This document shows positions 26,895-55,055 of a stretch of 64,000 nucleotides of DNA, piece by piece. Position 1 is the first letter of the stretch, and each line of letters opens with the position of its first letter. Where the stretch lies: positions 77,240-141,239 of the forward strand of contig NW_018405003.1 in NCBI RefSeq assembly GCF_002113885.1. The letters run 5' to 3'. The notes under the pieces are model-generated. The model was not told where the DNA came from. It worked only from the letters and a program-made list of their open reading frames with translations, and did no database searches. The stretch comes from Mizuhopecten yessoensis (Eukaryota). The translations under genes were made by a program, and so were the position numbers.

Positions 26895-29300
26895 ACTCCG
26901 CCCTCCTTTGTATTTCGTCTTTTCTATAATCAGTTCCCTCTATACAGCGCCCCCGTTTAAATATCATCCCCTCAATAATCCGTTCTCTCCATACAATGTC
27001 TACTTTATACTTTGTTCCAGGCATGTTCCGACCCCTATTTCCGTTCACTCTATGTTCCGTTCTCTCTATGGCCCGTCCCTTCCTTAATACGCCCCCTCTT
27101 TTACTCTTCATATTTTTCCACTGTCTTCTCTGGCTTCTATACTCCTTCACCTCTGTATCCCCCCCCCCCCTCCCCGCCCCCCTCAAGACACCGTCACTTC
27201 TATACTCCTTCACCTCTGTATCTCCCCCCTAGACACCGTCACTTCTATACCCTTCACCTCTGTATCCCCCCCCCCCCCACCCAAGACACCGTCGCTTCTA
27301 TACTAATTCACCTCTGTATTCCGCCCCCTCGAGATACCGTCGCTTCTATACCCTTCACTTCTGTCTTCCACCCCCTCAAGACACCGTCGCTTCTATACTC
27401 CGATGTCTCTGTACTCCGTCCCTTTAAGACACAGTCGTTTCTATACTCCTTCTTCTGTATACAGCGCCCCCTCTAGACACCATCCCTTTTGTACTATGTT
27501 TTCTGTCTTCTCTGTACTCTGACCCTCTAGACACCGTCCCTTCCATACACTGTCTTCTCTGTACTCCGCTCCCTCTAGACACCGTCCAATCTATACTCCG
27601 CCTTCTCTGTTATCCGTTCCATCTTTTTTATACACTGTCTTCTCTGAACTCCGACCTCCTAAAGACACCGTCCCTTCTAAACACTGTCTTCTCTGTACTA
27701 CGCCCGCTTTATTCCGTCTTCTCTGTACTCCTTCCACGCTAGCCACCGTCTAAAGTCCGTTCCCTCTAGACAACGTTCTTTCTATAATCCGTCTTCTCTG
27801 TACTCCGCACCCTCTATACACCGTCCCTTCTATGCTCAGTCTTCTCTGTACTCCGCCCCTCTAGACACCGTCTCTTATACACATTGTCTTCTCTGTATTC
27901 CGTTCCCTCTAGCCACCGTCCAAAAGATACTTTGTCTTCTCTGCACTCAACTCCATCAAGACACTGTCTCTTATATACATATTTTGCCTTCTCTGTACTC
28001 CGCTCCGTCGAGAAACCGTCCCTTCTATACTCCGTCTTCTCTGTGTTCCGTCCCCTCTAGAAACCATCCTTTCTTTACTCCGTTTTCTCTGTAATCCGTC
28101 CCCTCTAGAAACCGTTCCTTCTATACTCTGTATTCTTTGTACTCCCTCCACTCTAGACACCTTCGCTTCTATACTCCGATGTCTCTGTACTCCGTCCCTT
28201 TAAGACACAGTCGTTTCTATACTCCTTCTTCTGTATACAGCGCCCCCTCTAGACACCATCCCTTCTGTAATATGTTTTCTGTCTTCTCTGTACTCTGACC
28301 CTCTAGACACCGTCCCTTCTATACACTGTCTTCTCTGTACTCCGCTCCCTCTAGACACCGTCCAATCTATACTCCGCCTACTCTGTACTCCGTCCCATCC
28401 TTTTTATAATTCGTCTTTGTACTCCGTCCCCTCTAGACACCGTCCCTTCTATACTACGTCGTCTCTGTACTACGCCCACTATACACATCGTCCCTTCTAT
28501 GGTCTATCATCGCTGTAATCCGTCCCCTCTAGACACCATCCCTTATATATATTCCGTCTTCTTTGTACTCCGTCCCCTCTTGAAACCGTCCCTTCTAAAC
28601 TCCGTCTTCTCTGTACTCCGCCCCCTCTACATACCGTCCCTTCTATACTCCGTCGTCTCTGTAATCCGCCCACTCTAAACACCGTCCCTTCTATACTCCG
28701 TCTCCTTCTATACTCCGTCTTCTTTGTACTCCACCCCCTCTAGACACCGTCCCTTATATACTCCGTCTTCTCTGTTCTCCGTGTTCTTTATACGGCACCA
28801 CCTCTTTACACCGACCCTTCTATACTATGTCTTTTCTGTACTCTGTCCCTTCTATATTCCGTCTTCGTTGTACTCCAACCACTCTAGACACCGTTCCTTG
28901 AATACTTTGTCTTTTCTGTTCTATCTCCCTTCTATTATCCGTCTTTTTTGTGCACCGCCCCCTCCACACACCGTCCCTTCTACATTCCGTTTTCTCTGTA
29001 CTCTGCCTCCATTAAAAACCGCCCTTTCTAGACACCTTCACCTCTGTATTCCACCCCCTCTAAACACCGTCCCTTCTATACTTCGTCATCTCTGCACTTC
29101 GCCCCCTCTAGACACCGTCCCTTCTATAATCCGACCCCTCAAGACACTTTCCCTTCTATACTCTGTCTTCTTTGTACTCCGTCCCCTCTAGGCACTGTCC
29201 TTTCTATATTCCGTTTATTCTGTACTTCATTTCTCTGGACACCGTCCCTTCTATACTCCGTCCCCTCTATATACTGCCCCCTTTATATCTATACATCGTC
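26895..29300. repeat. Degenerate CT-rich minisatellite (about 47-50 bp unit)
   Basis: Recurrent CTCTAGACACCGTCCCTTCTATACTCCGTCTTCTCTGTACTCCGYCCC; accounts for the ORFs called at 26893-29191. Confidence 0.92.
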
Positions 29301-31809
29301 TTCTCGTTACCCTGATACATGCATTCTGACATGGGTTACTTATAAATAGACTCTATCTTAAGTTATTTTCTGTTGTAACCCAAAGCTGTTAATTGAACGT
29401 AGTAAAGCGTTTTATAACCTTCCCTCTCTGTTTTCTGTATTATTTTTATGTTTCAAACTTTTTACCGAAATTTTCATTTGTTTGTCTTGATTCCACTGAA
29501 AGATCCGTTGGACATATAATGCAGTAAATCTTTACTTATTTAGCTTTTGCATTAACATGTATTTTTTTAATTAATGTGTACTTCTTTACGGCGTTTTATC
29601 TAGCCATTCTTATACGTAACAAGGCCGATAAACCTGCTGGTGGATATCAATCCCGACGTAGGCCAAAACTTTGTAGCTGGAATAACTAGCTTTGAATTAT
29701 TTTATCTCCTGCAATCAAAAGTTTTATATTTTCAACGCGATAAGTAAAGGTTCTCCTACGAGTGGTTGTCGGTTAATATATTGATCTAACTAGAGATGGT
29801 TAATGTTCAAATTCGATAAGATACGAGGTTAACCTACAGTATCTTTATCTAATTTGAAAACTAACTCACGAGACTTAGATAAACATGATAATGAACCATC
29901 ACGAGTTTGGGGACCTTTTATTCTCACAACGTTTAGATAGTATATCTAGAAACCCATGTGTTTCCCTTGAGAATACATTATTCATGTTTCCGATCGGAGA
30001 AACCGTTGCCATGAACCATGACGTCACAATGGAAGATGACGTCGCAAAGCACTGTTACTTGACGCCATAATTAGAAGATTTACCCATTGATATAACTTCC
30101 AGGGTGTTGCCCACTTGTACAGCTATCCAATGAGTCGGGAGTGAGGGAACTCCTAACGGTTGTGTGGGAGAACGTTTTATTGTACCTTTCCATTTTGCTG
30201 CATTTTTACATATATTTTTTTCGAATACATTTGACATGGATTTTCCTTCGTTTGCCCTTAGACTTAGTACCACTGGTGAGTCTTAAACTGACGAAATATG
30301 TTTCGTTGCTTGGCTCGATCTGTACATCAAACAATTAAATTCTTAATTTCTATTTTTACTTAACATCCCTTCTATCCTTTTGTATTCTGAAGTCGTATAT
30401 ATCTCAACCATCCCCCTTCTATACCCTCACTTGAATATTACCAGGTAAGACGTTGTGGTTCCCATGTATCTATATATCGTATTACCTGTTTGAGGGCCTT
30501 TTCTGCACATCTGTGCATACAATGGCAATTTGCCAATGATATAATGTACATGTACGGGGTATAGTGAGGGGTATATAATGTAGTTCGGAGCAGGTACGTA
30601 CACTATAAGTACTACATATAATGATTTGAGTGTCAAGCTAGTACAGAGCGCCATTGTCAATACTCGAGTTATATAGGTGGATGTAATTGATCACTCGTGC
30701 ACCCGAACGACAATGCACTGTGGTTCTATCGGAGCTGCGTGTGTTTAAAGTATACTTTACTGTGTATATTCATCAACTGAAGTCCCTTTAGATGGTATGT
30801 GTACCTGGAAAATATCGACTCTCTACTTTTTGACAAAAGAGAAAAATAGGGTATAAAGGAATTTCATAGGCTTTGGCTGTTACCTAATTCGTTTTGTAAT
30901 AACGATCGTGGAAAAAAATGGAATGGGGAAAAAGAAAGAGAAATAAATAAATAAATTGATAGTCCATCCTTACTTTCAATTGAGGCCCCAAGAACTCCCC
31001 TGCCCAAAACCATTCCTAAACGAATTCACTTCGCGCAAAGGCTAGCTATGTCCCTGACGTGCATTCAGTGGTATCCTCTGTCATTTTGTAGGTTATGCTG
31101 AATACACTGTACTCATTGTATTCAGAAGATAACGAAGCTGAGTTAATTGTGGTTAATGCTATTTTATTCCATAGTTTATTTTTGCAGAGCATATTAAACA
31201 TCTGATGAACGAAACAACTGATAGATATGTGCAAACATTAACGTATACACCAAAGAAAGTATAAACGAAAAATACAGTCACTTTTGAAAATTGGTTATTT
31301 CTCTTTTTATTTAAATGAACTGGCACTATATAAAAGAATAATAAAAAAAAACAGCCGCTAGCACGGACTTAGAGAGCATCTATCTTTTAGTAGTATTTAA
31401 TATACAATTTACGGATTAAAAAAAATCTGGCTTCCCAAAATGTCGTGGATTTAAAAAGTTGTTGACTCTTTTTCCTGCTGTATAATTTGTGTTTGTACTC
31501 AGTTATACTCCGTAGAAGTAACGTTTAGGCTACATATAGATGTATACATAGGTGAGCTGTACACCCCTGTATATGATATTGAAACACCTGTTTGTGCCTT
31601 CATGTATTTATCTATTTTCTACAAGACATATTTTATATTAATATCCATCGCTAGCAATTACATATGCGCTTTGGTATGCCACACATAATTTATCGGTTAA
31701 ATGAGCACCTGTAGAATGTATCGAATCATTTGCTTATTTCAAATAATGCAGGTACTGTAATATACAACTACTACCGCTAATGTCTCGTTCATGTGGGGGT
31801 TGTTCATCA

Positions 31810-31900
31810 GCGTACCACGTGACCGGCGATGAACCAATGAGCTCTCACTTCAGATCCCGTATACTTCAATCGAGGTGACACAGTTTAGCCAATGTACAGT
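31810..31900 (+). promoter_or_regulatory. Candidate promoter upstream of the short first exon
   Basis: CCACGTGAC E-box at 31815-31823 and CCAAT boxes at 31834 and 31889, in a locally CpG-richer stretch about 270-350 bp before ATG 32164. Confidence 0.5.
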
Positions 31901-32163
31901 TGTGTGAGGGGATCTGATGTATGCGAGTGGAGTGCGCTAGATGTGCACGGAATTGTCATCGCTGTGTTCGTTCGTATGTGGAATTTATGTGGCATATTTT
32001 CACTTTAATGTCCAGGAATTTACTGGGGTTGTGATTCGATGACATTACTTTAATGTAACAGACGGAATATAAACTTGCTATTGGTGTTGAAAGGCGCCGT
32101 GTCTGAGCTTTAAGCTCTGTAGGTCACAACGAGACTTGATCGTCAACACTGTAAAACGACAAC

Positions 32164-32217
32164 ATGATTAAATTAGAACCGGTGTGTGTTCCCGGCAATA
32201 ACAACGCTATAACGCAG
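32164..32217 (+). CDS. Alternative short first coding exon (MIKLEPVCVPGNNNAITQ) of a Nrf2-type soluble isoform; 642 aa when joined to 44236
   Basis: ATG at 32164 is followed by 54 nt ending in a perfect CAG|GTAAGT donor, phase 0, in frame with the [11 protein letters not shown] exon. It lies downstream of E-box and CCAAT elements. The layout mirrors vertebrate NRF2 exon 1 (MMDLELPPPGLPSQQ|DMDLIDILWRQ). Confidence 0.65.
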
Positions 32218-32499
32218 GTAAGTTATTGTCTTGTTCGTGAGATGTGTATTACGACATTTACTCGTGTTCGTTCGCCCTTGTGAAGAAACAACTATCAATG
32301 ACCTGATTTCATGAAACATAACATCATGCAATATTTCAGTGTTACAATTGATATTTTGTTATGTGTGTAATGTTTTGTTGTATTGCATATCGCCATGTCT
32401 ATATCCATTTGGAGGGTCAGTGGATTTGATTAAAAAAATAGCCTTATACTCAGGTAGGTATGTTTGTGCTCGGTTTGACAGGTGGGGGTTAATATTTTG

Positions 32500-32595
32500 C
32501 ACCGGAAGTAAATCAAATGAAGGAAAACTACACAATACGCATGCGCCATATGACGTCAATTTCTAATTCGCTGATTCACACACACGACTTCCGCT
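32500..32595 (+). promoter_or_regulatory. Candidate second promoter or enhancer upstream of the Nrf1-type exon
   Basis: ACCGGAAGT ETS site (32501-32509), CGCATGCGC NRF-1-like site (~32538-32546), perfect CRE TGACGTCA (32551-32558) and a second ETS core ACTTCCG (~32587), all within about 95 bp. Confidence 0.5.
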
Positions 32596-33072
32596 GCTAT
32601 TGGACATACTTTGAGGAATATTCTCGAATGTTTGTAAATACTGCTGGTGACATTTCGTCATATTTTGTTGAGTTATCATACACGGGGCGAAAGGTGCACA
32701 TTTAGATGAAGGACAATTCCATTTAACTGAAAAAGGCATGTGCGTGTCTCACGGCAGACGAACTGTCATGGCATCCAAGTACACAACTACAACAAACACC
32801 TTCTTAGTTCATCGGAATTAATTAGATATTGTGGTATATATTTTGATCATCTTGAAGGGGATTGAGATAACTATACATCTTAGTCATTTTCTCTACAACA
32901 GGAATTTTGAAACGGCATTCAGTGACTGGTTTCATACCATTTCCACAGTTAGGGGGCGACGCGAAACAGAACAAAGTGCTTTGTGTTTACTTATGAACAT
33001 GGACACGTGAGCCCCATTGCGGGTGTTTATGACATATAACTTGTTATCACGGAAACTCAGATAGCTGCTGGC

Positions 33073-33642
33073 ATGAGATTCAAGGAGTATTTCGCTGACG
33101 GATTGCTCAACATAGCTATTCTCCTTAGTTTACTGAGGACAGATTTGAACAATGTGGTAGACCGTAATTACAGGCATTACCCTGAAGTCCAGGACATCCT
33201 GCATGGACAGACTGCTGCGATTTCTTTAACCAATTTTAATAATTACATTGATTCTCTTCATGGACGAATTCATCCCAAATCACCTGACAATAATATTGAT
33301 ACCATTATTCAAGATTTGCGTTCCCTAAGTCGGCTTGGTAACTGGCAAAGAACGTCAGACAATGGAAACAATGGCGGTAGGGGTATCTCTGCTTTTCTTG
33401 CCAGCACGTCAACATTGATACAGCAACCTGTAGTTAGCATTAACAATCAACATAATGATAATAATAATAACAATGAAGATGTGGATGAAGGGGACATTCA
33501 GGACGATGAGCTGACAGCTGCATTAAACCAAGGAGATGAAATTGAAAACAATGCACATAATGAGTTTTCTCTGTATGAAAACAATGACTTTGGATCTGGG
33601 GCAGCATCTCCTGACCAGCAGACAGAAGAGCCGACGTCTGAG
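33073..33642 (+). CDS. NFE2L1: Nrf1-type N-terminal exon: NHB1 transmembrane signal-anchor, HPKS motif, NHB2 with putative DDI cleavage site, acidic linker
   Basis: [50 protein letters not shown] aligns by eye with human NFE2L1 MLSLKKYLTEGLLQFTILLSLIG..PPLREIILGPSSAYTQTQFHN..IHPKSID. The donor GAG|GTATTG falls after codon 190 (phase 0). Confidence 0.88.
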
Positions 33643-36600
33643 GTATTGCCAAAGCCCTTAATTGAAGTCACAACAAAAGTGCTTTTCAAAAGATAACATC
33701 TTCATGATATTGCTGCAATTGATTGCTATTTATTTTCTATCGTTTTAATAAGATTACCGTAATTGCCGGGAAACCCTTTTTGAAAAGGCTAGATATATAT
33801 CGCTGGTTAAATTGCTTCAAATGTATTCCAGTTCTGATGATAAATTAGCTTGCAATTGAGGCACATGCAGGGTTGACAGAAACTAGTCCTTTATGCTCTG
33901 TTGAGGAGGTAGAAAATGAAAAGCTGTGTATTATCAAACACAAGGAAACAATAAATTTAGTAGTTTCCATGCTTTTTAGTTTCAGCTACATGTTGATACA
34001 TATACGTGTCTTTCAAAAGGAGGAAGTTTGATTTGGGGAAAACCAGGGACTGATGTGAAAATTCACCAGTATCAAATATTAGTTTAACATCATAGATCTT
34101 CAAAGCTATTCATTCAAAACTATCTATTTTGTACAAATGTGCATCGTGATAACATTAAACCCAGTTGTTATCAATCAAAATTAGCAACAAAGAACACAAA
34201 CATCGTGATTTCAGAAAACACTTGATCATGAGGGTATTTTTGACCCCCAAAAATTTGACTCTTGATTTTGAAAGAACCTGTCTATTTGACTTGTGTTTTA
34301 ATAACCCTTTGAATTTTAAAGGTAATATCAACATGCTTTAAAATCAATATGAGAAGGAGTCCTTTTTTCTGTATAATAATGAGCTTGGGGTGTTGGGTGA
34401 CCTGTTGGATAACAATCTTGTCTTTCACCAAGGTGGTCAGGGTTTGAATCTCATAATGGACATACAAATGTGCGGTCACCTGCCCTTTCCGGGCTGCTTC
34501 AGTTTTATCCCACATGAACCTGAGCCCCTGGACACCACACCATCCACTTATGATCCAGGCCAAACTTTTTGCTCTTACCTATTTTTAGGATATATATATA
34601 GGAATGTAAAAGCTATTAATTCTCTGTAATCTTTTAATAGGGAGACTAATTTGCTATGATTCTATATCTAGTTTAACATCATATTTAATACTAAAGGTCC
34701 TTCAAGGATACATACATATGTACTGTAGGGGGCATTGTGATGTATTGCCTCCCTGTAATAGCGGAAGGCTGATGTCGTCTTACTGACGACGAGTTGTCAA
34801 CTTACTGACGACGAGTTACCTTGAGTTGTTTCAATTACCCAAAATGCCGAACATTTAGAAATGAATAACAACTGAAACCATAATTTTTAAAGTACTTTTG
34901 TCCAACCTTGGAAAACCCATTGCCTTCCTCACCAGCTCAAATATTCAATACCAAGGCCAATAGCTGTCTTTCCAACGGCAAACAAAAAGTTTGTAAGGAA
35001 GTAGAGAGAAAATATAAAGATCCCAAATGTTGCATTGGGTTCTTCAGATATAATTATATAAAACAGGCAAATTTACTTTGAGACCTATGTTTCGGGCTAC
35101 TAGGTTTTATATTTTGATGATGGGGTGTAAAAAATAGTATAAAAGACAACGAGAAACAAATACATGCATGCTTACCTTAATTAGTCTTATGATAAGTAAC
35201 AACTGGGGGGGGGGGGGGGGGGGCGGAGACCCAACGTCCCTGCAAGGAAGTCAGTTCCATATACATATATGCATATGGCGGTAGGGATCCTGGGGTGGAT
35301 ACCTTAATGGTATTCAACAGTGCTTATAGGGGAAAGCAGAGCAACGTAGGATGTAAATCAAACATTACATTTTGTACCGCCCAGATTCATAGGTGTTGTT
35401 GCTCATATCATCATTTCTATTTTCATTTAGTCTTATGATAGTATGATCCTGTGTTATTTGCCTGAAGATAAATTTAAACTTGAAACTTGATGGATGATTG
35501 TTGAAGGGTTAATAAGTTTTGTACGTAGATGTCAGTTTATCATAGACAGGATAATAAATCATGAAAGATGTACATGTATAAATTAACATCAGGGGAGACC
35601 ACCCATTGATCACAACTCAGCTTGGACAGGTAGATATGTTTCTACAATTTTTTTCAATAACAAAATATTGATACGAAGGGCCAAGAATCATTCATCACTG
35701 TCAAAACATACAGTAAATCAGTATTAGAAACTGTTATCTAAAACAGTTGTACAGATATCAGCCTATTTGTCCGTTTTCTACGGGTTCTATAAACTAGGGC
35801 TGGTCTGGGTAATATATATCAGTCCCGATACGATATTGACATATTCTTCCTCCAATTGACTTTTATGTCCTCCGTACTATGAAACACTTAATGAACGTGT
35901 GATACTAATTATTAGCCATTAGAAAATATAAATGAAAGAAAACGGAAGTCAGTTTATCGATAGAAAATATGCTACCTATTAAAAAAATCCTTATTTTTCT
36001 TTATTCGTCATTTAAGATATGTTTTTAAATTGAAGTTATAAAACAAGACACAATGATTTTTTCAGAAAATGTTGTGATTTTGTGAATCTAACTCCAGTGA
36101 AAATTTCCCTATAAACCGTGGTGGTACAACAATTATACAGCTGTAATATCACTTCTTGTGAACAGGTTTGAAGGCAGACATTTAACCATCATTGCCATAA
36201 AATGATCTAGAATTGTGATAAGTATGTCTCCCCTTCGAATGAAGGGAGACATTGTATTTCTACTTCTAGTTCTTCTAATCTCAACTTGTCCGGGCCATAA
36301 CTTTTAAACCGTTAAATATATCTTGATGAAACTTAAGGTATGCATGTATCGCCCACAGAGGTGTGCAGTGCACTGGAAATAGGTCACTGTGACCTTCACC
36401 TTAAGATCAAAGATCAATTAAGTGCAACATTTTCAGTAAAATCTTGTCCAGCCCATATTTTTTTTAACCTTTAAGATATCTTGATCAAACTTGAAGTATA
36501 CCTTCATCACCCACAGAAGGTATGCAGTGCAATGGAATGAGGTATCTTGCTTCACTATATAAAGAGTTATGGCCCTTTTGCTTACTTTTAATACTGATGT

Positions 36601-39600
36601 TTGTCATGGATCTTAGGAAGGCGGAATATCTCGCATTGAAATTGGGTCTCGTGCACCACTATATATAGAGTTATGTCCCTTTGTTTATTTTTTATATCAA
36701 AGTTTGTCCACAGCATAACTTCTAAACCGTTAAAAGATATCTCTATCAAACTTGAAATTTCCCTCCATCATCCAAAGAAGGTTTGCAATGCATTGGAATT
36801 AGGTCTTGTGCCCCACTATATACAGAGTTATAGCCCTTTGTTTATTTTTAATACCAAAGTTTGAACAGAGCATAAGTTCCATGTAATTTCACCTATGTTG
36901 ACCAAACTTGCTAAAGTTATTTATCTCGGGAAGCAGGAGTGTCGTATTCTATATTCGGGTCTCGTGCCCCACTGTATAAAGAGATATATATGGCCTTTTG
37001 TTATTTTTTTTTATACCAAAGTTTGTCTTTTGGCTAATAAGGGGAGACATATATAAGTTTCTAGTTATTAATGCATGTCGATTAATGTATGGAATCACAT
37101 CTCGGTGATCAATCCACATCATGATTGCTTTTACAGTTCAAAAATGTCTTTCCAGTATATTATTTAAATATTAAAATTATTTAAAAATTTAGAGTGAAAT
37201 TGGTGACCAATCATAATTAGTAGTAGATTTTAATCTAGGTCAGAGTATACAATACCGGTACCTAGTGATGTACAAATATATTGAATACAGGTAATCAAAT
37301 CGTTTGATTTTGGACCCTATAATAAATTATAAAACAATCTGACCAAAAAATCAGATGACAACAAGTTTAACATGGTAACAGTTTAAACAGCATGTTAATT
37401 CGAAAAATCTATCGGAGAAATTTTCAGATTTGAGACCATAAAAAAAAATCTGTTATTGCATAGAATTCATAAGATATTGAATTGTATGCATTAATTACAA
37501 TTTAAAAAAAAAATGTGACATAAAACTGCCAACAAACCTAAGCCCCTTAAGAACATGGATGTCAGGTCTACATTGTCAAGAGGTATATATTAGAACCTTT
37601 AAAGTTCATCTATTTTCTATCATCGAGGGACTATCAGAATTTAGATTGAAAAAACAACATTTTACCATTTCTTATAAAATAATTAATTTCAGAATCATTA
37701 TGTGTGACTCCTGGAAGCCATTGTTACAGACTTGGTGACCATGTACTCTGTGCGTGATCGCAGTGCACCTTGCACCTGACAGCCCAAAAGTAGGCCAAAC
37801 GATTGTGAAAGGCCATCTGGTACAAGATGTCATCCAAGATCATCAAAATCAATAACAAATGTGACATCTTGTAAGCTATAGCACACGTAGGCCTAAGGAA
37901 CAAGGCTATACCTGTGTAGTAAGATATAGCATACACATATACTGTAGGCCTCAAGAACAAGGCTGTACCTGTGTAGTAAGATATTGCTTACACGTAGGCC
38001 TAAAGAACAAGGCTATACCTGTGTAGTAAGATATAGCATACACTTAGGCCTGAAGATGAGGGCTGTACCTGTGTAGTAAGATATAGCATACACATAGGCC
38101 TAAAGAACAAGGCTATATACGTATACCTGTGTAGTAAGCTAAAGCAAACACATAGGCCTGAAGAACAAGGCTATACCTGTGGAGTAAGATATAGCATACA
38201 TGTAGGCCTGAAGAACAAGGCTATACCTGTGGAGTAAGATATAGCATACATGTAGGCCTGAAGAACAAGGCTATACCTGTGTAGTAAGATATAGCATACA
38301 TGTAGGCCTGAAGAACAAGGCTGTACCAGTAACCTGTGTCATTATGATCATATTCAGGGCTAAAACTGTCCAAGGTCAGATGGCGATGGAGCAGAATCCA
38401 GAAGATAATAGATTTGGTCATTTATTTTTCCTGAAAGTACTTTTTCAACACCACTTGCGCAAAAGACCAGTCTTTGAATGTGACAAGTGTTCTCTAGCAA
38501 AAGAGTTGACAATTCTATAATTCTCCCTGCCTGAAGTTGCATCTGATAGTTTTGTCACTTTTGCAAACAGCAACTGCCATTATTTATGTTTGACTTTAAA
38601 AGCACCCCTGCAGCCACTTTTTGAAGTGCTTTATAGGCACTAATTACTGCAAATATGGTTGTCTATTTTAGAAAGTTGAAAAAATGGAGCCATGAGCCAG
38701 CTGTGGAGCAAATCTACATGAACATAATTGTACACCATCTTGTTAAAAATCTGTTCTCATAAACGTCCTAGGCAGCTCTAAATGTTCTCATTTTTTCATC
38801 TCTGCATATCATTTAACAACGTTTACCCGAGGGCATTTAACAAAATTTACATCAACATTGAGCATTTCCATATAAACCTTGTCAATGTGATCCGTCACTG
38901 AATGGAATATTTTTCTCTCTCTCTCTCTGGGCGGTGAAACACGATACATTTGTACGTAATTAAGTAGAGTAAATGGGATCTTGGGTTACGCCTTGTACAG
39001 AAACTGGTTTGCCAAGGACGTCAGTCTCGGGGTAGATTGTTAGCCTTATATGTGTGAACGTCTTCCACTGAAAGATGATAGAGATTTCATACAGCTTTTG
39101 GGTTACTGTGGCACGACTCGTGTTTCAAGTAAAATGAGACACACCTCGATCTGAAATGCATTACAGGTGAAGTTCACCTTATCGCACAGGTAAAAAGAAC
39201 CAAAACACCTAGCACAGGTACACATAACGAGCGTTAGTTTTACCTGTGATATTGATCTGGCTGTGAGTCAGAACTGAAAAAAGTTCACCAAAATTTTATC
39301 TGTAATCTAGGAGAGATCTGTTACAGGTATCCTAGGCTAAGGAGCCAGTTCTGAGCTTTAAGTGACACAATATCCAACTCTGTCGTCGCAGGCAATAGAA
39401 ACGGATACAAGGACACCCTTATTTCTAAATTAAAATACACGTGTGACATTTCAGCTTCAATTCTGTAATTGGTCAATAAACTCTAATTAACATTGAAACT
39501 CCAACATACAGCATTGTATAATTCACATGCTGTGCCGGAATATTCAGTTTTGCTGGCATATTATTAATTTTATTGACCTAAAACTTATAAATGAATGTGG

Positions 39601-42600
39601 TTGAGTATAGAACAGTTGGAGTTCTAGACAGCTTTGTGCACAAGGCTTATACATATTCTGCAGTATGAAAAGTTGAAAACGGAAAATATCGAATTTTGAA
39701 AATTACCATACCGTACATATTACTGGTTTGACGGCACCTGATCGATGGCTCCCTCAGGTATTTTAGAAATATTAACTCAAATACAGCATTATGCTTATTA
39801 TAAAATTCCACATTCTTTATTCCTGATTACTTGGAAACTACCTAAATAATTGGTTTGCTAGTTTGCCACAGAAATGGTGATATATCCTTTCAGATGAGTA
39901 ATTGAACTGTACGAAAAACAAATTATATGCTGCGAAACATTAAGAGGACTTTAGGACTCCGGCAAGGTCAGAAAAATGTCCGATTACAAGATGTTGGTGG
40001 AGGAAAAATTTGTCTAAAAAAGGCACCCCAAGCTTTAAGCTACTCATTTACTTATAAATGCTCATCAGCACTGTTATTTGTTGAAATACGATATGAAAGA
40101 ATTGCAATGTGTTACATAAAATTTTGATAATAATTCTAAGTATGTACATACATATATATATATACTATGTAGTGTATCCATATATTTTAGTGTCTCATTT
40201 GTAAATTTCTTTTACTTTTGGTTTAGATTTTTTTTTTATGTATATAATATATATTTTGTTTTATTTTTTTCATGTATGTCTATTCTATGTATAGATTTTT
40301 GAAGAAAAGTTATTGTAGGGTCAACATAACTTGTCTGTAATTTCATAAAAACATGCTAAAAAATTTAGAGTCCTTTAAATTCATTAATTGGCATTGAATA
40401 TATATATATTTTAAGCACTAATGATATAAGAATCAGTCAGGCTAAACATTCACTTTTTTTTTAAATTCCAACACCAGCATAACATGTAAGTGTAAGGGAG
40501 TGGGAACATCTTTAGAAGTTATGTTGGAACAGTTGATGTCTAGGTCTTATTTAAGGTTTTAGATTTGGGGTAGCTATATAGTCGCATAGTCCCAACACCA
40601 TCGGTGACAAAGTACAGTACTATATCTGCTGTTTATAACCAGCATGGCCTCGTACCCTTGGGGCTGAAATACTCTCCATCCGTGTGTCGTGAATACACAA
40701 GAATAATGCTATTGTACGGCCAGGTAAAAGTTTGGAGGTAAATTGAATCCCTATTAGAAAGCTTTTATGAACAGGGGACTGAGCTTGCTTTGTAGGTTTT
40801 CAAATCTCTTGTTGTTCAGAGGATCGTAATGTTTTTAATTCTGGTTGGAGCGACATTGGTATGGAACAGCTGCTTTGTTGTCGGCTTAAAATCCCACACA
40901 ATTACATGGGTCTGATTGCGGTAATGATTCGAGCGCGGAGGATCTATAGCATTCTAGGTCACCAGGAAGCTTTATGTCGGGGTCAGTTGCTCTGATATAA
41001 TGGAAAACTATAGAAGCCCATTACGGAGGAAGTTTTCCACTTGATTGATGGAGCAGAAACAGTTTATTGGTCGTAGTGTGACAAACAAGGCCTGTTTTGT
41101 CCTCGTTCTGAGGTTCCAATCAACCAGCTTTGTGAATTTGTTTAAACTATTTGATCGCCAATCAAGATCTACTGATGTTCCTATCAGTTTGCTGATAGGA
41201 AAGAACACAAACCTAGGTATCTGTTCATGATATATATTTAAATATTGGATCGCGATTGTTTTTATGAATTTTTAGAGCATATTTAATTTTTGAAAATATT
41301 TCTAAAGCTAACTATACCGTGTGTTGAGGAGTCGTACTCATCTGACTCAATACACAGGAATACTACAGGTGTATGTATATACACACGATAATGGAAGTTG
41401 GGAAGGGCCAACTTGTGTCATTTAGACTGGGAAAACCAGTCTCTACCTGAAGCCTTCATTTGATGTGAATAATACGTACATACAATCAATCATCACAACT
41501 CAAGTACATGTATTCAAAGTAGGATGTTGAAACTCAAAGCAAATTTTACTGTTGTGTATCTTTTACAAAAAAAACATATATATACATGTTAACTTATACT
41601 CTTAAAATTACCATTTTTAAAAAGGCATTACGTTTTTCAGAGAATAACATTTTTAAAATTTAAGGGTTTTTTCGAGAGTGAAGGATTACTGAATATAACA
41701 CAACCAATACCCCCCCACTCCTTCAAACCAGGAGAAAACTCTGAAAATTAAAAAAGAAACATAAAAACGTCAGTGATGTAAATAGATAAGATTTGTTTAA
41801 ATTGAATCTGAAGTAACGGTCAATGTTGGTTATGGACTGCTTTGTGAACTTTTGACCTTATTGACTGGTGACATCAGCTGTGTACGTTTATGTACATTAT
41901 TTATAAGGTATTCAGTCGAGATGATTGCTGTTATTGAATTACCAATATTTAAAAATTGAGTGAACAGAGCAAATTATAATTAACAGTGTTCCCAGGGGCT
42001 ATCTACATGTATACCTGAGTAAACACGTGTATATCTAGGTTACCTAGAAGAATACATTTCTATCACATGAATTTAGTATTGAATGTGGTAAATTTACCGA
42101 AGTCATGTTTTCCATTTAAGGCCCATTGTGGTGTCAGTAGAACATGTACATGCATGTGAAACTCATTGAAAGGATTTATTTTGATTCCATTTCATATGAA
42201 AATGTTTTCAAAGTTTTATTTTAAAATATCTTAAAATGAAAACTTTGTTACTTCTTGCAGAAGTTCTATTTTTATGTATAAAAAAGAAATGCATGATCCC
42301 AAAAAACACATGTATTGCATTAGGCTTAATTGCATGTCGGGAAATAAAAAAGCGAAATTTCATCCTGCCTATAACTTCTCATAGTAAACAAAAGCTAGTT
42401 TTCTCATATTTCTGACTTTATAGACTTGAAAGCCAAGTGTACTATAACATTTGTACTACCCCAATCACTGCAGATGCTAGCAGATCATTATTGACATACT
42501 GCATATATATATTTGCTGACTTATATCCGAATGTCCAATTAAGTTCAAAACAAACAAAGTATACTGATCAAGCAATATTCTTGTAAAAATGATAAATTAC

Positions 42601-45600
42601 ACATGTACATAAATCTACATGATCAAGCTACATAAGAACCAGGATCTGAGGAAATCTATAGAAGCGTGCTTGAACTTCATGAACATACAATGTGAAGTGT
42701 AAGCTGCTTAGCAAGTAATGAAGACGATATCAACATTTGTGTAAACATGTGATCAATCTCATGTTTTACACAACCAGGATCTGTGGAAATTTTATTGAAT
42801 GATCCACTCCTCCATATACAGCTACTAGGAAAATGTGGATTTCATAGTCAATATTTTATGACCAGTCGGTACACACCTTGTGGTGTAAGTGGTCAATCTC
42901 ACACAGAGAGGTTCTCACCCAATACAGATACAGGATGTGATCACCACCACTCATGTTACAGGGTTTGTTGGTACATTAGTACCGAGAATCCCCTCTCAAC
43001 ATCCTGATTGCAATTGGTTGATCAATCCTTGTGGGTAACGAGGATATATTGATCCTATGAATATATTCCTGAACTCTGTACACGTACTGCACCTTGATTT
43101 GTACAAGTGTAGGTTACTGGCTTATATAAACAAGTCATACTAATGAACGGTCTAAACTGACTTACATGTAAATACAAAAATATTTCATCAAAATACAAGC
43201 TTTTAAATCTGGGACTTAAAATTCTTACTTTTAAAGGGAATTAAGAACATGCCAGAATTTGATAAGAAAATACCCCAAAAATGTTTCGAAAAGTAGTTCT
43301 CGGTTATCTTTAGAAAATTAAACAAATCAGTCACCAACTGTTAACTGGACGATATCCATTGATATTGAGTGGGTGGTAGTGAAGGAATTTTGTTTACTTT
43401 TAATCACAAGCCAGTCAGGGGGGGCCGAGTCAAAACAGAGCATGTATCACAATACATACAAGTACGTTGTATCGGGTATACTTTAAAATTCACTAGCTAG
43501 CTAGGAATTCATATACACGTCAGACATAATATTATTCAATGTATATGATTTATAAAGCATTAACAGATTCTTCAGATGTAAAAATGTCACTACCTTATGT
43601 CCTTTTCAGGGGTTTACAATTTCATATTTCGGCAACAGCCATCAAGAAGACCTTTTTTCATAGCCCTGTGATCTTATGGCTGGCATCAGACTTGTGGAAT
43701 TCATTCACCCATTGTTTTCGTGGAACTGCTTACTTATTAAAGCATGTGTACATATGATTTTAGAGATACACTCCCAATGAAGGAAACATAATTTGCAATC
43801 ATATATACAAGACCGCAGGTTTAAGTCCTGCTTGTACATCTGTCCACTCTTCACCTGTGTGCGGTCCCCAGGTACACGTCCTGTCCACGATGTCCTGTGG
43901 TCATAGTAGTCCATGTAAACAAGGATCTAGATAAAGCAATACTGAGAAACCTGGAATCGGCTCACAGTTCTTAATTATCAGAAGCATTGTTTAATGGTAT
44001 CCAATTGAGCTAGTGCTGAAGATTAAGCTGCCACAGTGCCATCTAGTGTTTGTACATGTGTGTATGCATCTCAAATGCAATGTGTGGTGCAATTTGTCTA
44101 CAGTGTGCTGACAGATTTGGTGTGGGTGTACGACATGTTATTTCCCCAGTTTCCGGGACTAATGTACATACTTAATTACGAGAAAGGTAACAAACTGTTG
44201 GCGTCTTACGTAACGTGTGGTTTGTTTTGTTCCAGGATCTTGATTTGATAGACGTGCTATGGAGACAAGACATAGACCTGGGAGTGGGGAAGGAGGTGTT
44301 CGACATCAACCTCCGCCAGGAGCTGGAACGAGAACGGGAGTTGGAACTCCAGAAGGATAGAGAGAAAGTGAGCACTTTAATAATTATAAGTCTACGAGAA
44401 TTATAAATGAAAGTATATTGCAGAACTTTTATAACTCTTAGACACTTTGTCGATATATAACAAGTGTTCTGGGATAGTATAAAGATAATAGTAGTTTAGA
44501 AAGTGTGACATTCTATATAATGTTTTGGATTAATGTAATTCCAGATTTATATATATATGTACACAGTCTTGATAATTTAAGATATTTGTTTTGCTTAGTT
44601 TTTCAACTGTCACTGAGTGAAACTTCTTTTTCATTGGAATTTTATGCAAATAATAAGTACTGATCATGAGTGCAATCACCATTGATACAGAAACAAGCAA
44701 CATTATTTTGCTAGCTATACTTACAGCATGATCATACAATGTATTGTCCATTGTTAATAATTCATTTTTCACTTTAAAGCAAAAAGAAAGAGAAGTCCTG
44801 CAGTGTAAACATGAAGAGCAGAGATTACAGCAGCAAAGAAGATGGTTGACAGAAAACTTTATGCAGGATACAGAAACAGGTATGGTTTGAAACAAGGATC
44901 CGAGCCAAGCTCGGAATTCTGTCTAAAAATGAAAGGGTGGATAATCATAATACCTTAACCTTACCTTTTGTATGCTACGTACCTCATTGGTTTCCTAAAA
45001 GACGGGATGTACAATCCCACTTACCTTTCTCTCTTTGAAGAATTCTCTTGTATACTTTACATTATGTATTTTACTAGGAATTCAGGCAATTCGGTTTAAA
45101 TTTGTTTCATCTGGTTTTGACCGAGAATACAATGTCTATTTTGCTTAATTAAATTTTCTCAAAACATAGATTTATTGAATTTGCATTGAAGAATAATTAT
45201 GCTAAAACAACCTTTAAAAATAAAAATAATACATGTTTTGGCAATGTGGTGATAATTGTTTTCTTTTCTTTTAGGTGAATGGGTACCCCTTAGAGGAAGA
45301 GCTTCAAGTGGTCAGCCTCCAATTCCGAACAGCCAGCTTCAGGTCAGTTGCTCAGGAAAAAATCATGTTACATTTAAATAGTGAAACTGAGTTCACCTGT
45401 GCAAATTATTAATGGTGTGTGCACTTACATAATCATAATGTAATTCACTCATTTGGAACGTATCGGGATTCAAACTGGAGCTGCTCTGTTGATGATTCTC
45501 GGGACTGCAATAAGTTAATATGTCACTTCAAAGCAGGTCAGCTCCATTGTGTAGAAAAGACAGTCTTTGTTGATTGCTGTAGTTTTTTGTTAAGTTTCCA

Positions 45601-48600
45601 TTGTGAACGGTTGACATGTGTTTACACAAACATTACATGAGGTGGTATCTGAGAGGTGAAATGTACATTAAGTCAATAAAATGTTAGTATATGTACTGCT
45701 GTTCATGTCGTGTTCTTTGCTGACCTGTACGTGTTTGTGTACTTACAGAACTTTATGCCATACGATAACAACATGACTGTGGTGAGCGAGCCCCCGCCCC
45801 TCGAGGGAGATTACGGAATGCCGGAACATCAGTATCAGCACACGTCTCAAACAATGGCACCTCCTCAAGCGCAGCCCTCTCAGATGATGACTGGATTTGG
45901 GCCAGACATGGCTAACTACACAGCAGCACAACAGGTACAAATGTAGTCTAGCTCATATAAAGTCAAGGTCACAGTCATTACTGTACAACATGTAGTCTGG
46001 CTTGTGAAGGTCATGGTGACACTAGCTCCTGTAAAGTTTGAAGTACATACTCACAACAACAAAAAGGAAAAGAAAGACAGACGCCTTGCCTAGGCCAATA
46101 TCCATGAATACATTCCCATGCTTATGCTTAGGTTCTGTGTTCATACTCAGTTTCTTGATCAAGTGATCAATTATTTAAAAAAACAATTTATCAATGACTT
46201 CTGAGAATTTTTCTAGAAACTTGAGAAAGCTGAATAATGTTTTCAGTATTTGAACTTAACTGTGTCACCAGATTTAAGTGAGTTATAAGAAAGTTGGCTT
46301 GCACACAGATTCCATGCATGAGCATAAGAAAGGTTTCATAAATACTGGCCCTGGTAATTTTTTTTTTTTTACAGAACTTGTTAAGGAAGGTTGTCTTGTC
46401 TTACCAGATAATACTGAAGAAGTTTAAGAAGCTGTGTTTGTTATATTCTAGATAGTACTGTTGTAACATGAAGTAATTTAAGCTTATTATTTTTGCAAAA
46501 AAATGGTAGCTTTGATTATGTGTATGCTATAATTAAAGTGAATGTCATCTTCCCAAATTTCAATTAAGTTTTTGAATATTCATCTGTTATGTATACATGT
46601 ATGTATTATATCTAAATTGTTCTCATTGAGTTTGTTTTGTTTTCTAAAGAATCCCGAGCAATATACTCCAATGGAAAGCCTTGAGGAGAGATGGCAAGAT
46701 CTTGTGAACCTGCTGGAACTGCCTGAAAATGATACAAGTATGAGGCCCCCCATGGGGATGGGCCCTGTGAATCAAACTGTGGTGTCCCCTACAGACCACA
46801 ACTCGGTGTTAATACAGAATGCCACTCTGCCTGTGGCCCCTCAGCTCAACAACACACTGCCGACACCGTACTCAAACACTTGTAAGTACACTTCGCTAGT
46901 GCTGTTCAGTAGACAGGTCCAGTGGTCAAACATCACCATAAGTCATAACATTTGTCGTAGTTGAGAAAGAAATGAAGTGAAACTAAATATAAAAATGCAG
47001 ATACATGGCATGTTGGTCTCCTTAATTAAAATGAAGAAATAAATTTTGTTTAAATAAAAAAAAAAGCCCACCTACAAAATATACTAATTTTGTTGTTTTT
47101 TTTCCAGCAATCCCACAGCAGCCGATGACTAACTTCACCTCAACAAGTTCGAGCGAGGGCTGTCCGACCCCTCTGGACTGGGAGCAAAGTGAATTGTTCT
47201 ATAATAATGGAAGTGGTGGGGAAAACCATGCTGATCCCATCGAAGACATGGAGAGTATTCTCCCCGACATAATCCCCGAGGACTACAACCTCACAGAGAT
47301 GGCTCTTAATGATGGTAGGGATTCCCATTATATTACTTTCCAGCTAAAAAATAGGGCTATTTAGTTTGATCAAAGAAATATAACCAAGCTAATAAAGAAA
47401 ATAGGAAGCCATTCTAGATACGCATAATGTCGGTGGGGCGCATAATGTCGGTGGGGTCTTAATGGATATTTTTTGGGGAAAAGAACCCAAATACCTCCCT
47501 GTTTTTATATCTGGAATAAGCCTTGCATCACTATACTTATATGTTAATGTCAATTTATTTCAAGTCCATAAGGAAGTATTGTTTCAACCTGTTTATTAGT
47601 GCTGTGGCCACTTTGATTTGTTTAAGAGATGATACATTTCTTTTCTCTGGTGTTTTCCAGGTTTAAGGTCGATGAGAATGCTTGATGACAATAGCAGTGA
47701 GTCGGGAGTGTCCCTAGGGAGCTCAGAACAGGTACGTTATCTAGTCACTGAAACAACATTGGTTACTGAAACTCATATTCTTCCTAAATATAAATGTCAA
47801 TTTTTTTTTCAAGATTATCAGAGTTTGAGTTAAATAACAATTCTCACTTTTAAACTTCATTTTTTCCCTTTTATTCAAATGTAGTTAAACTGCTGTATTG
47901 TGAATTTGATATCACCGATACATTTAATGCTACTGGATGAAAATACAAAGTTAAATCTTGGGAACAGCCTTATTTAAACCCAATTTTACTACAATTTGCT
48001 CTAAATTCTTAAGGATATCTTGGCCATGTTTTCATTCATTAGGTTGCCTTGATTCCAAACGATATTTCCTGAAGTGAATTCCTTAAGGTCATTGCAGATC
48101 TTCAATAAACCATTTTCTCCAATGTTTTCTACATGGTCACAGTATAGATTGAAGTCACAAACTTTGGTTGCAACTTAAGTAGATTAATCAAACGGGAAGT
48201 ATAACAACTGCAAATCATTTGATCATTGTTTTTCCAGGACCAGTTCAGCGAAGCAGCTATGTCGCCGTTTGATAGTCTGGAGGGTGCCACCGGTGGCCAC
48301 GACTACAGTGGTGGATCGCCAGGCTTCAACAAAGCCAGCAGTTTCGAGCACAACAATTACAGCAAATTTAACGGTGGTGGTAATGGCTACAACAGCGAGG
48401 GAGACAACTACAACAGTGTGGGTGATAGTTATAGCTCGGGAGGCAGCTCCAACGGGGACAGTGCCCACAGCTCCTCTAATGACACCGACTTCAATTTCCC
48501 ATCAACAAAAACGAGCCACAATCACATTCGTCACAATCATTCATACCCCCTGCAGCCAGGTCAGTCTCCGCGCGAGTACAAGAAATACTGCACGTCCATG

Positions 48601-49116
48601 GAGAAAGAACCTCGCCACAAAGGCCCTCATTGTAAAGATTCCAAACGGATACAGGAACTGAAAGTGCCGTTAACAGTGGACGAAATTGTTGATGTACCCG
48701 TTGAAGAGTTCAATGAACTGCTTACGCAATACAAACTTACAGAACCACAGTTACAGTTAATCCGAGACATTCGTAGACGAGGAAAAAACAAGGTGGCCGC
48801 TCAGAACTGTCGAAAACGAAAGTTAGATGTCCTAGTAAATCTTGAGGACGACATGTCAACTCTCCAATCAACTCGTGATCGTCTGCTGCAGGAGCGGCAT
48901 ACCATTGACAAGCAGACACGTGAAATGAAAGACAAATTTAGCTCCCTGTACAGGGAGATATTCCAGTCACTACGCGATGAGCACGGTCGTCCGTACGACC
49001 CGCATTTGTTCTCGCTGCAGCAATCAAGTGATGGAAATGTGTTCTTGGTCCCCCGTAACATCACAGCAGATGAACAGCAGGCTAAGAGCAAGAAGAAGAA
49101 AAATGAGAAAAAGTGA
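33073..49116 (+). CDS. NFE2L1: CNC-bZIP transcription factor, Nrf1/NFE2L1-type (ER-anchored) isoform. join(33073..33642,44236..44367,44780..44879,45275..45342,45749..45934,46650..46881,47108..47314,47661..47731,48238..49116); 2445 nt, 814 aa
   Basis: All introns are GT..AG with matching phases (0,0,1,0,0,1,1,0). Motifs occur in the family order: NHB1 anchor, [20 protein letters not shown], Neh5-like [14 protein letters not shown], sequon-rich region, ESGVS, EGATG, HNHSY, CNC + bZIP ([21 protein letters not shown]), Neh3 ([14 protein letters not shown]). Confidence 0.9.
36223..37066 (+). mobile_element. Non-autonomous Helentron/HINE-like element in the long intron
   Basis: 5' TATGTCTCCCCTTCGAATGAAGGGAGACAT hairpin, subterminal inverted copy AGGGGAGACATA at 37040-37051, CTAGTT end, and degenerate internal repeats (CTTGTCC..CATAACTT..AAACTT). 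Confidence 0.7.
37875..38325. repeat. Minisatellite, 50 bp unit, about 9 copies
   Basis: AAGAACAAGGCTATACCTGTGKAGTAAGATATAGCATACATGTAGGCCTG at 38161, 38211, 38261 and neighbouring positions. Confidence 0.95.
44236..44367 (+). CDS. NFE2L1: Shared exon: Neh2 DIDLID/DLG element
   Basis: tttgttccag| [44 protein letters not shown] |gtgagc; 132 nt, phase 0-0. Confidence 0.95.
44780..44879 (+). CDS. NFE2L1: Shared exon: Neh2 helix and first part of the ETGE motif
   Basis: actttaaag| [33 protein letters not shown](G) |gtatgg; 100 nt, phase 0-1. Confidence 0.88.
45275..45342 (+). CDS. NFE2L1: Shared exon: completes the ETGE motif (GEWVP...)
   Basis: ttcttttag| (G)[22 protein letters not shown] |gtcagt; 68 nt, phase 1-0; the spliced sequence reads DTETGEW. 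Confidence 0.9.
45749..45934 (+). CDS. NFE2L1: Shared exon: P/Q/M-rich linker
   Basis: acttacag| [10 protein letters not shown]...NYTAAQQ |gtacaa; 186 nt, phase 0-0, open and GC-richer than the flanking introns. Confidence 0.85.
46650..46881 (+). CDS. NFE2L1: Shared exon: Neh5-like activation motif and start of the NST glycodomain
   Basis: ttttctaaag| [25 protein letters not shown]...PYSNT |gtaagt; 232 nt, phase 0-1; resembles NFE2L1 DLEQQWQDLMSIMEM. Confidence 0.9.
47108..47314 (+). CDS. NFE2L1: Shared exon: NST/acidic region
   Basis: tttttccag| (S)[11 protein letters not shown]...[10 protein letters not shown](G) |gtaggg; 207 nt, phase 1-1. Confidence 0.88.
47421..47456. repeat. Perfect 18 bp tandem duplication in an intron
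   Basis: CGCATAATGTCGGTGGGG x2. Confidence 0.9.
47661..47731 (+). CDS. NFE2L1: Shared exon: Neh6-like beta-TrCP degron region
   Basis: gttttccag| (G)[23 protein letters not shown] |gtacgt; 71 nt, phase 1-0; resembles the DSDSGLSL/DSGIS degrons. Confidence 0.88.
48238..49116 (+). CDS. NFE2L1: Terminal exon: CNC domain, bZIP and Neh3
   Basis: tttttccag| DQFSE...HNHSY...[20 protein letters not shown]...[23 protein letters not shown]...leucine zipper...[21 protein letters not shown]...TGA. Confidence 0.97.
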   Translation, partial: DQFSEAAMSPFDSLEGATGGHDYSGGSPGFNKASSFEHNNYSKFNGGGNGYNSEGDNYNSVGDSYSSGGSSNGDSAHSSSNDTDFNFPSTKTSHNHIRHNHSYPLQPGQSPREYKKYCTSMEKEPRHKGPHCKDSKRIQELKVPLTVDEIVDVPVEEFNELLTQYKLTEPQLQLIRDIRRRGKNKVAAQNCRKRKLDVLVNLEDDMSTLQSTRDRLLQERHTIDKQTREMKDKFSSLYREIFQSLRDEHGRPYDPHLFSLQQSSDGNVFLVPRNITADEQQAKSKKKKNEKK

Positions 49117-53682: not shown

Positions 53683-55055
53683 ATAATAATAATAATAATA
53701 GACTTTATTTAAATTCTATAACACATTGAGTCAATGACTGATCTCACATGTGGTCGACATAAAATATACAATATTTACAACATGAGTAAAAAATAGATGC
53801 ATAGCATACATGTACACATAAAACACATTAGGTTAAAATAGTAGCATATCACAGGTAAGATTATAATATCACAGGTAAGATTATAATATCACGGGTAAGA
53901 TTATAATATCACAGGTAAGATTATAATATCACAGGTTTGGAAAGTCAAAGAGTATGTCACATGTGTAATTATAAAACTAATGAGTTGATTTGGTTTAAAC
54001 TTCGTTTTATTAAAATTTTGTTTGATAATACATCGAAATACATGTTTTATAAAACAGAAAAGGAAACAAAAACAAGTGTCGTGACACTTATGTAAATTTG
54101 TTACCTGCTTAATAATCAGCTTTTCAACACTAGCTACAAGAATGAAGTAATATGTACAATAGAATAATTACGGGAATAGGGGAGGGGGTAATGGATTGGT
54201 ATGCAGTGGAAACCAGGAATGAATAACATATCAATATACATATGATCATCAGATGGTAATATCATATTGCTCTATTGCGATGAGTATGTGGAACACGATT
54301 CTGTAAAATATAACAATGGAATAGTAGATGAAAATGTCAGCAGTCCTGTAAGTGGACACTCGAAAAAGGTTAAAATGTATATACAAGTTACATAGAATAA
54401 ATCACCACTAAATCAACTATTGACAAAATTAGTATGTCACAAAGCACCGCCATGATTATTAAAAACGTTGCAGTTCACATACTAGCCATCACTCTTATCA
54501 AATATAAGTCCATAAAACACTTTCCCGCTTCGTCCCTGGTACGTCCTGCTCTTTCAAGGTAACACATCACTTTTATCAAACAATCATAATCATGGCGAGT
54601 TAGTGACATAATATGGTATAAAGAAATGCAATGGCAAAATCACTGAATAAGCATATAAGTCCAAATACATTTTAAAACAGTAGTAAAACGAATGCAACAC
54701 AACATACATATATATATATATATGTCAACATGAAATTGTTAAGGACTATTCGTTTATTTGAAATCTTTTAGTTTTGAGTATATAATTTTGGACGGCTAGA
54801 AAAATCGTAGTGTTATCTTGATGGGTTAGAGAGTCATCACCAAAGATTAAAAGATTAGTTGATAGTTGATAGGGCAAACTCAGAATATGAAGCTGTCTTA
54901 GTGCTGTATATTTATTACATTTTAGCAAATAATGTGTTGAGTTCTCAATGGCACCGCAGGAACAATTCGGGGATGGTTTGATGTTTTTCGTAAACAAGTG
55001 TTCTTTTAGGGAGCTACATGACATACGCAGTCTTGCGTGGTAGATTTGACCCAGT
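53683..55055 (-). mobile_element. 5'-truncated LINE (CR1/L2 group): ORF2 C-terminus plus probable 3' UTR and tail
   Basis: ORF 54746-55078 reads HARLRMSCSSLKEHLF..NI..SPNCSCG..E...HYLLKC..Y...R...LLIFG..L....N..IF.AVQNYI..TKRF, the C-terminal Cys/His region of such elements. On the minus strand an AATAAA followed by (TAT)n at ~53683-53709 looks like a LINE tail; linkage of the two parts is inferred. Confidence 0.7.
53846..53936. repeat. 20 bp tandem repeat, about 4.5 copies
   Basis: ATATCACAGGTAAGATTATA units. Confidence 0.93.

Follow-up and report, generated by a model that had tools for sequence, protein, structure and literature searches.

A single gene of the scallop Mizuhopecten yessoensis, which lies in a 64,000-nucleotide stretch of contig NW_018405003.1 (assembly GCF_002113885.1, positions 77,240 to 141,239 of the forward strand; the whole stretch is called the window below), is opened by alternative coding first exons that are all joined to the same second exon. 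The gene is the NFE2L1/NFE2L2-like (CNC-bZIP, 'Nrf') gene of the species. With a probability of about 0.85, we propose that its alternative promoters give rise to a long form that would be anchored in the endoplasmic reticulum (ER) membrane and to a short, Nrf2-like form that would be soluble. A preliminary description of the window had placed two ATG-initiated first exons at 32164-32217 (18 amino acids) and 33073-33642 (190 amino acids), both ending in phase 0 and both continuing in frame at 44236, and all of these coordinates are confirmed here. The isoform switch that it proposed is supported by the data that follow, whereas ER anchoring, solubility and control by Keap1 are argued by analogy with related proteins.

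A single Nrf-type locus

The exon common to the isoforms, exon 2 (44236-44367, forward strand, as are all exons of the gene; 44 codons, phase 0, AG acceptor at 44235), encodes the DLG part of Neh2. Queried alone against 1.84 billion representative proteins, it returned CNC-bZIP proteins, whose names came from a second search and from cluster look-ups. The window matches two RefSeq proteins of this species at 100% identity, XP_021348784.1 (isoform X1, 814 amino acids) and XP_021348786.1 (isoform X3, 642 amino acids); the N-terminus of X1 is the 190-residue peptide of exon 1b and that of X3 the 18-residue peptide of exon 1a. When the window was walked against the latter protein, nine GT-AG exons from 32164-32217 onward reproduced it residue for residue, and in a tblastn comparison the coding part of exon 1b was 99.5-100% identical to XP_021348784.1. 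The last coding exon matches the Pfam families bZIP_Maf (E 8.3e-19) and bZIP_1 (E 1.1e-7), and a CNC motif is found at residue 698 of the long form. Pfam matched no family in the 190-residue and 44-residue exons; neither NHB1 nor Neh2 has a Pfam model.

A six-frame search of the 988-Mb assembly detected the DLG exon once and the NHB1 exon once, together with one strong copy of the CNC-bZIP exon and one weak match to it (30% identity, E 7e-4). Since the diagnostic exons occur in one genomic copy, the scallop holds one Nrf-type locus, and we conclude that the gene described here is the single NFE2L1/NFE2L2-like gene of M. yessoensis.

Both first exons are spliced to exon 2 and have their own promoters

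Exon 1a (31879-32217) contains the coding sequence 32164-32217, which begins with ATG, comprises 18 codons, ends in phase 0 at the donor CAG/gtaagt and opens isoform X3. The coding sequence of exon 1b (exon 32600-33642; coding part 33073-33642) also begins with ATG, comprises 190 codons, ends in phase 0 at the donor GAG/gtattg and opens isoform X1. In order to follow their transcripts, we used RNA-seq data aligned to positions 31500-34500, namely three raw runs from three studies (X24, which is a polyA run, X19 and X22) and the contigs of run X9.

Both junctions predicted in the preliminary description were found. The junction 32217^44236 is carried by 47 reads of X24, 3 reads of X19 and one contig of X9, and the junction 33642^44236 by 14 reads of X24 and one contig of X9. 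Behind both donors, the loose read ends form the same 30-letter consensus with an agreement of 1, and this consensus is window sequence 44237-44266. The loose ends are offset by one base (to 32218 and 33643) because the first base of the intron and the first base of exon 2 are both G. As this consensus is exon 2 sequence, both junctions exist in RNA. No joint between exon 1a and exon 1b was listed in the runs aligned on 31500-34500, at a threshold of three reads or one contig.

RNA depth over exon 1a covers 31904-32217, and a contig at 31879-32218 is preceded by adapter letters; the leader begins at ∼31879, with possibly several starts up to ∼32005. Between the exons, no read of the three raw runs covers 32308-32509, and depth returns near 32600, indicating that exon 1b has its own transcript start and promoter, with a leader that begins at ∼32600-32650. 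In X24 the short form is dominant, with a depth of ∼60-68 over exon 1a compared with 15-20 over exon 1b, while in X22 exon 1b is deeper than exon 1a. Because the ratio of 1a to 1b varies between samples, it is regulated or tissue-dependent, and promoter choice sets the mix of isoforms. We conclude that at least two promoters are in use, each with a separate coding first exon; in the RefSeq annotation there are three.

Just upstream of the 1b RNA start, a perfect CRE/ATF (cyclic AMP response element) palindrome, TGACGTCA, is present at 32551-32558 and an inverted CCAAT box (ATTGG) at 32598-32602; these are candidate core promoter elements of the long isoform. Antioxidant-response-element cores (TGAYNNNGC) were also counted, giving 38 matches against 36.9 expected and none at either promoter. 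Autoregulation through such elements was dropped as an idea, given a match count at expectation and no core at either promoter.

The long form has an NFE2L1-type N-terminus

The preliminary description had likened the long first exon to that of NFE2L1, and this likeness holds: in a BLASTP comparison, the 190-residue exon matches the N-terminus of a fish NFE2L1-like protein with E 2e-11 and 33% identity over 95 residues. Exon 1b was aligned with nine molluscan long forms and with the same fish protein. The aligned N-termini keep the NHB1 core (K.YF.DGL..IAI.LSLL.R.D), a YPEVQ.I..GQ box, HPK and DLRSL; they also have A/T-[FWY]-L in common and close the exon with ..T.E. In the scallop exon these appear as an NHB1 anchor, an NHB2-like YPEVQ box, an A-F-L site and an acidic tail that runs to PTSE.

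The long form has only one strongly hydrophobic stretch, at residues 7-21, where the best 15-residue window reaches a Kyte-Doolittle value of 2.0; the maximum for the short form is 0.99. The A/T-[FWY]-L motif, in which the Leu is invariant, aligns with A-W-L of the fish protein, which is the position of the vertebrate (DDI2-type) cleavage site, and it is thus a putative cleavage site, recognized from sequence. The shared body also carries 15 N-x-S/T sequons, of which 11 lie within residues 298-509 of the long form; these are predicted sites for luminal glycosylation and NGLY1 editing. The hydrophobic stretch, the BLASTP match and the conserved core identify the N-terminus of the long form as an NHB1-type signal anchor homologous to that of NFE2L1.

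Conservation of exon 1a and comparison with NFE2L2 exon 1

In the short form, 18 hydrophilic residues stand in place of the first 190 of the long form. This 18-residue exon is near-identical in Ylistrum and Pecten. First exons of 16-18 codons with the pattern MM-E/K-L/I/T-E/Q...Q are found at the same junction in oysters, venerid clams, Dreissena, abalone, Gigantopelta, Pomacea and a chiton, so that the 18-codon frame, whose conservation in relatives the preliminary description had named as a check, is kept in bivalves, in gastropods and in a chiton. On a 4.9-kb Logan contig, a related scallop protein (660 amino acids) opens with this peptide, and clam equivalents lie on contigs of 2.4-3.4 kb. 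Contigs of 2.4-4.9 kb represent spliced mRNA, as they are too short for a gene whose chain of coding exons spans 17 kb in the M. yessoensis window. An exact look-up of the two shorter RefSeq isoforms of M. yessoensis among assembled contigs gave no hit, in a collection from which entries for this genome may be missing. Lingula, Saccoglossus, Argonauta, Physella, Owenia and Apostichopus have a first exon of 12-20 codons or an NHB1 exon at the same acceptor. A region-limited word search with the first 62 residues of the short isoform gave 43 candidates and, among those named, no phyla beyond molluscs, apart from one candidate from the annelid Owenia.

Vertebrate NFE2L2 proteins (gar, salmonids, caecilian, frog) start with MM-E-I/V-E-L/I...QQ and continue directly with DMDLIDILW. 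We built a profile from molluscan short-exon peptides only and obtained empirical p values by comparison with 100,000 random peptides starting with M. Of nine first-exon peptides from vertebrate NFE2L2, eight gave p values of 1e-4 to 1.3e-2; these peptides are short and mutually orthologous, and the pattern had been noticed before the test. With the same profile, the short exons of Lingula, Saccoglossus, Argonauta and Physella gave p values of 0.02-0.26, and that of Owenia gave no score. Many database fragments read ..FQ ahead of DIDLID or DMDLID. These are probably intron ends translated through the acceptor, which would fit the same exon boundary in vertebrate genes. Together, pattern and position suggest that exon 1a is homologous to NFE2L2 exon 1, a case that is suggestive but not conclusive.

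A proposed isoform switch and its alternatives

Downstream of the first exon, X1 and X3 are identical, from the DLG/ETGE-containing Neh2 region through to the CNC-bZIP domain. By analogy with NFE2L1 of vertebrates and SKN-1A of C. elegans, the long form would be anchored co-translationally in the ER membrane and would receive N-glycans on its many sequons. It would then be retrotranslocated and cleaved near the conserved A-F-L site, and the processed protein would either be degraded or, when proteasome capacity falls, be released, so that it would report proteasome capacity. The short form, like NFE2L2 and SKN-1C, would stay out of the ER and remain cytosolic, where it would be controlled via DLG/ETGE, presumably by Keap1. 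Since both isoforms carry Neh2, the switch concerns the ER routing and the anchor and not recognition by Keap1.

Several observations weigh against this reading. As Neh2 is shared, the long form, once processed, could also be a target of Keap1. Upstream ATGs with short upstream open reading frames are numerous in both leaders (the longest 1a leader, 31879-32163, has nine and the 1b leader, 32600-33072, seven), and this leaves the translation efficiency of either coding sequence in doubt; the same feature suggests translational control of both isoforms. The DSGIS beta-TrCP degron of Neh6, sought with the pattern DS[GA][VILM]S, is absent, and the aligned place reads ESGVS. Finally, one contig of X9 runs unspliced across 32189-33643. 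The unspliced pieces of X9 were given no weight, because this run also holds intron contigs and may contain pre-mRNA or DNA.

An alternative explanation for exon 1a is that it serves as a non-coding leader exon of the long isoform, spliced just upstream of the ATG at 33073. A candidate acceptor (cag/) does exist at ∼33051, in frame with this ATG, and in a Pinctada imbricata model the short-exon peptide stands at the start and leads into the NHB1 peptide. That entry, however, is labelled 'hypothetical protein' and looks like an unreviewed gene model, and in the scallop exon 1a is linked directly to exon 2 by 50 reads and one contig while no 1a-to-1b joint reaches the listing threshold. Reads of exon 1b, moreover, start near 32600, downstream of the stretch of zero raw-read depth. 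We consider a leader role very improbable, and the 1a-to-1b splice was rejected as no such joints were listed.

The isoform switch could also be questioned at the level of what the two N-termini do. The 18 residues might have no function, which would make the short form an anchor-less, constitutively nuclear variant comparable to mammalian Nrf1b or NFE2L1-616 and its likeness to NFE2L2 a coincidence or convergence. The peptide is indeed very short, mammalian NFE2L1 variants from intronic promoters bear unrelated short N-termini, and the short exons of Lingula, Saccoglossus, Argonauta, Physella and Owenia score weakly or not at all on the molluscan profile. Yet the reading frame, like the MM-E-L/I-E start, persists from chiton to bivalves, a profile made from molluscs only scores eight of the nine vertebrate NFE2L2 peptides, and position and phase, directly ahead of D-L/M-D-L-I, are identical; on balance, we regard a functionless N-terminus as unlikely. 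The variation of the 1a:1b ratio between runs of different studies would also be expected if the isoforms differed mainly in where and when they are expressed, through tissue- or stage-specific promoters, rather than in post-translational regulation. This we find scarcely credible, as loss of the 190-residue signal-anchor region is expected to alter topology in any tissue and the pairing of long and short forms is kept across phyla.

Shared exons, a third first exon and surrounding sequence

The exons that follow exon 2 are common to the isoforms. Exon 3 (44780-44879) terminates within the ETGE motif (..DTETG) and exon 4 (45275-45342) finishes it (G-EWVPL..), so that ETGE is divided between two exons while DLG lies within exon 2; in the long form DLG is at residue 204 and ETGE at residue 266, and both motifs are present in X1 and X3. 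Exon 5 (45749-45934) was placed by the exon walk against the RefSeq protein. Exon 6 (46650-46881) is rich in Asn-x-Ser/Thr sequons, and exon 7 (47108-47314) is acidic and also sequon-rich. Exon 8 (47661-47731) contains SESGVSLGS, which resembles the DSGIS degron of Neh6, and the last coding exon (48238-49116) encodes the CNC and bZIP domains, with the stop codon at its end.

The preliminary description was right that two N-termini exist, but its count fell short. A third RefSeq isoform, X2 (XP_021348785.1, 664 amino acids), takes its N-terminus from exon 1c (21073-21192, forward strand; 40 codons, phase 0, donor TTG/gtaagt), for which tblastn gave 100% identity. Exon 1c sits 11 kb upstream of exon 1a, and its 40-residue peptide is Cys/Tyr-rich. 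The N-terminus of Pecten maximus isoform X1 resembles this peptide, which is thus partly conserved. The gene therefore has at least three annotated alternative coding first exons, not two.

Three other features of the window were recorded. Between exons 1c and 1a, two long Pro/Ser/Leu-rich and internally repetitive frames that look like open reading frames occupy 27012-29191 (forward strand); they are probably tandem or dispersed repeat DNA and not genes. Within the long intron, at 34126-34500 (forward strand), run X24 has a one-directional signal with a depth of 1-3.4 and several base differences, which may be repeat-derived or come from an unannotated transcript. Downstream of the gene, an open reading frame at 54746-55078 on the reverse strand carries a Cys/His-rich motif typical of the C-terminal ends of non-LTR (long terminal repeat) retrotransposon reverse transcriptases and is probably a transposon fragment.

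Comparison with known systems

The isoforms X1 and X3 of the window are identical in sequence to the RefSeq entries of this species, for which RefSeq offers no interpretation. RefSeq also contains long/short isoform pairs for Ylistrum, Crassostrea virginica, Haliotis asinina, Lingula, Saccoglossus and Apostichopus, and short second isoforms are named for Pecten, Mercenaria, Dreissena, Liolophura, Gigantopelta, Pomacea and Physella. Among cephalopods, the long type is found in Octopus and the short type in Argonauta.

The evolutionary idea has likewise been put forward before. In section 4.2 of their article, Fuse and Kobayashi (Molecules 2017, PMC6155405) state that in each of fly (CncI), octopus, Ciona and worm a single Nrf locus gives rise to variants that carry the ER-binding domain and to others that lack it. 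The same section holds that this one-locus mechanism is older than the radiation of triploblasts and that, with the vertebrate quadruplication, the variants were allotted to different loci. A study of amphioxus (PMC11989980) presents an ancestral NRF that unites NHB1 and Neh2. The finding is therefore not new, since the isoforms are already in RefSeq and the evolutionary proposal dates from 2017.

The scallop gene resembles C. elegans skn-1 (ER-anchored SKN-1A, soluble SKN-1C), Drosophila cnc (CncC with NHB1, CncI without it) and the genes of octopus and Ciona, as they are summarised in that review, in having one locus whose alternative 5' ends give forms with and without the ER anchor. SKN-1 differs in lacking DLG/ETGE and the leucine zipper, whereas both scallop isoforms have a vertebrate-like Neh2 and a full bZIP domain. 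The scallop first exons share one phase-0 acceptor, as in vertebrate NFE2L1 and NFE2L2. With vertebrate NFE2L1 (Nrf1/TCF11), the long form shares NHB1, an NHB2-like box, the A-W/F-L site, a sequon-rich middle region and the CNC-bZIP domain. The exon ends, ..LTKE in NFE2L1 and ..PTSE in the scallop, are both spliced to D-I/L-D-L-I-D. Unlike vertebrate NFE2L1, however, the scallop long form has a canonical ETGE, and the N-terminal identity is just 33% over the 95 aligned residues. Vertebrate NFE2L2 resembles the short form in having a first exon of 12-18 codons (MM-E/D-hydrophobic-E...Q) that joins in phase 0 to D-M/L-D-L-I-D-I/V-L-W, a likeness that is statistically modest, and in having both DLG and ETGE and no anchor.

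Mammals also make anchor-free NFE2L1 isoforms from alternative first exons. In Nrf1b (PMC3483171), an unrelated N-terminus of 12 amino acids replaces the first two exons of Nrf1a (174 amino acids), and in NFE2L1-616 (PMC10646089) the N-terminus is an unrelated peptide of 44 amino acids. The preliminary description had proposed a pre-duplication gene whose isoforms were partitioned between the vertebrate paralogues; this is supported in outline, but with Nrf1b and NFE2L1-616 the partition is not a clean one. Nrf1b loses the DIDLID exon too, which is among the first two exons of Nrf1a, so that its splice position is unlike that of the scallop short form.

Implications for the Nrf family and for molluscan biology

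For the Nrf family, the gene is a well-resolved lophotrochozoan example of an already published hypothesis and opens no new question, though it hints that NFE2L2 exon 1 predates vertebrates. What is added here is read-level proof of both junctions, a third first exon, the single-copy status of the gene and a possible homology of exon 1a to NFE2L2 exon 1. Homology at the level of exons may be a new detail, as section 4.2 of PMC6155405 is silent on it. A stronger form of the idea would make the scallop first exons direct ancestors of vertebrate NFE2L2 exon 1 and of the NFE2L1/NFE2L3 anchor exon, with the vertebrate genome duplications resolving the promoter pair through reciprocal loss of first exons; we judge the odds on this to be even. 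If it is true, the promoter pair predates the split between protostomes and deuterostomes and would be a textbook case of exon-level subfunctionalisation.

For work on molluscs, the naming used in the literature may hide the isoform issue. The 'Nrf2' of Azumapecten farreri (AWV55266.1, 820 amino acids) starts with the NHB1 anchor exon and is thus the long form. In molluscan ecotoxicology, an assay with primers in the shared exons would give one pooled value for all isoforms. The transcripts of both forms are present in RNA, and one bivalve gene would in this way supply both a proteasome/ER-stress arm (Nrf1-like) and an electrophile/oxidant arm (Nrf2-like).

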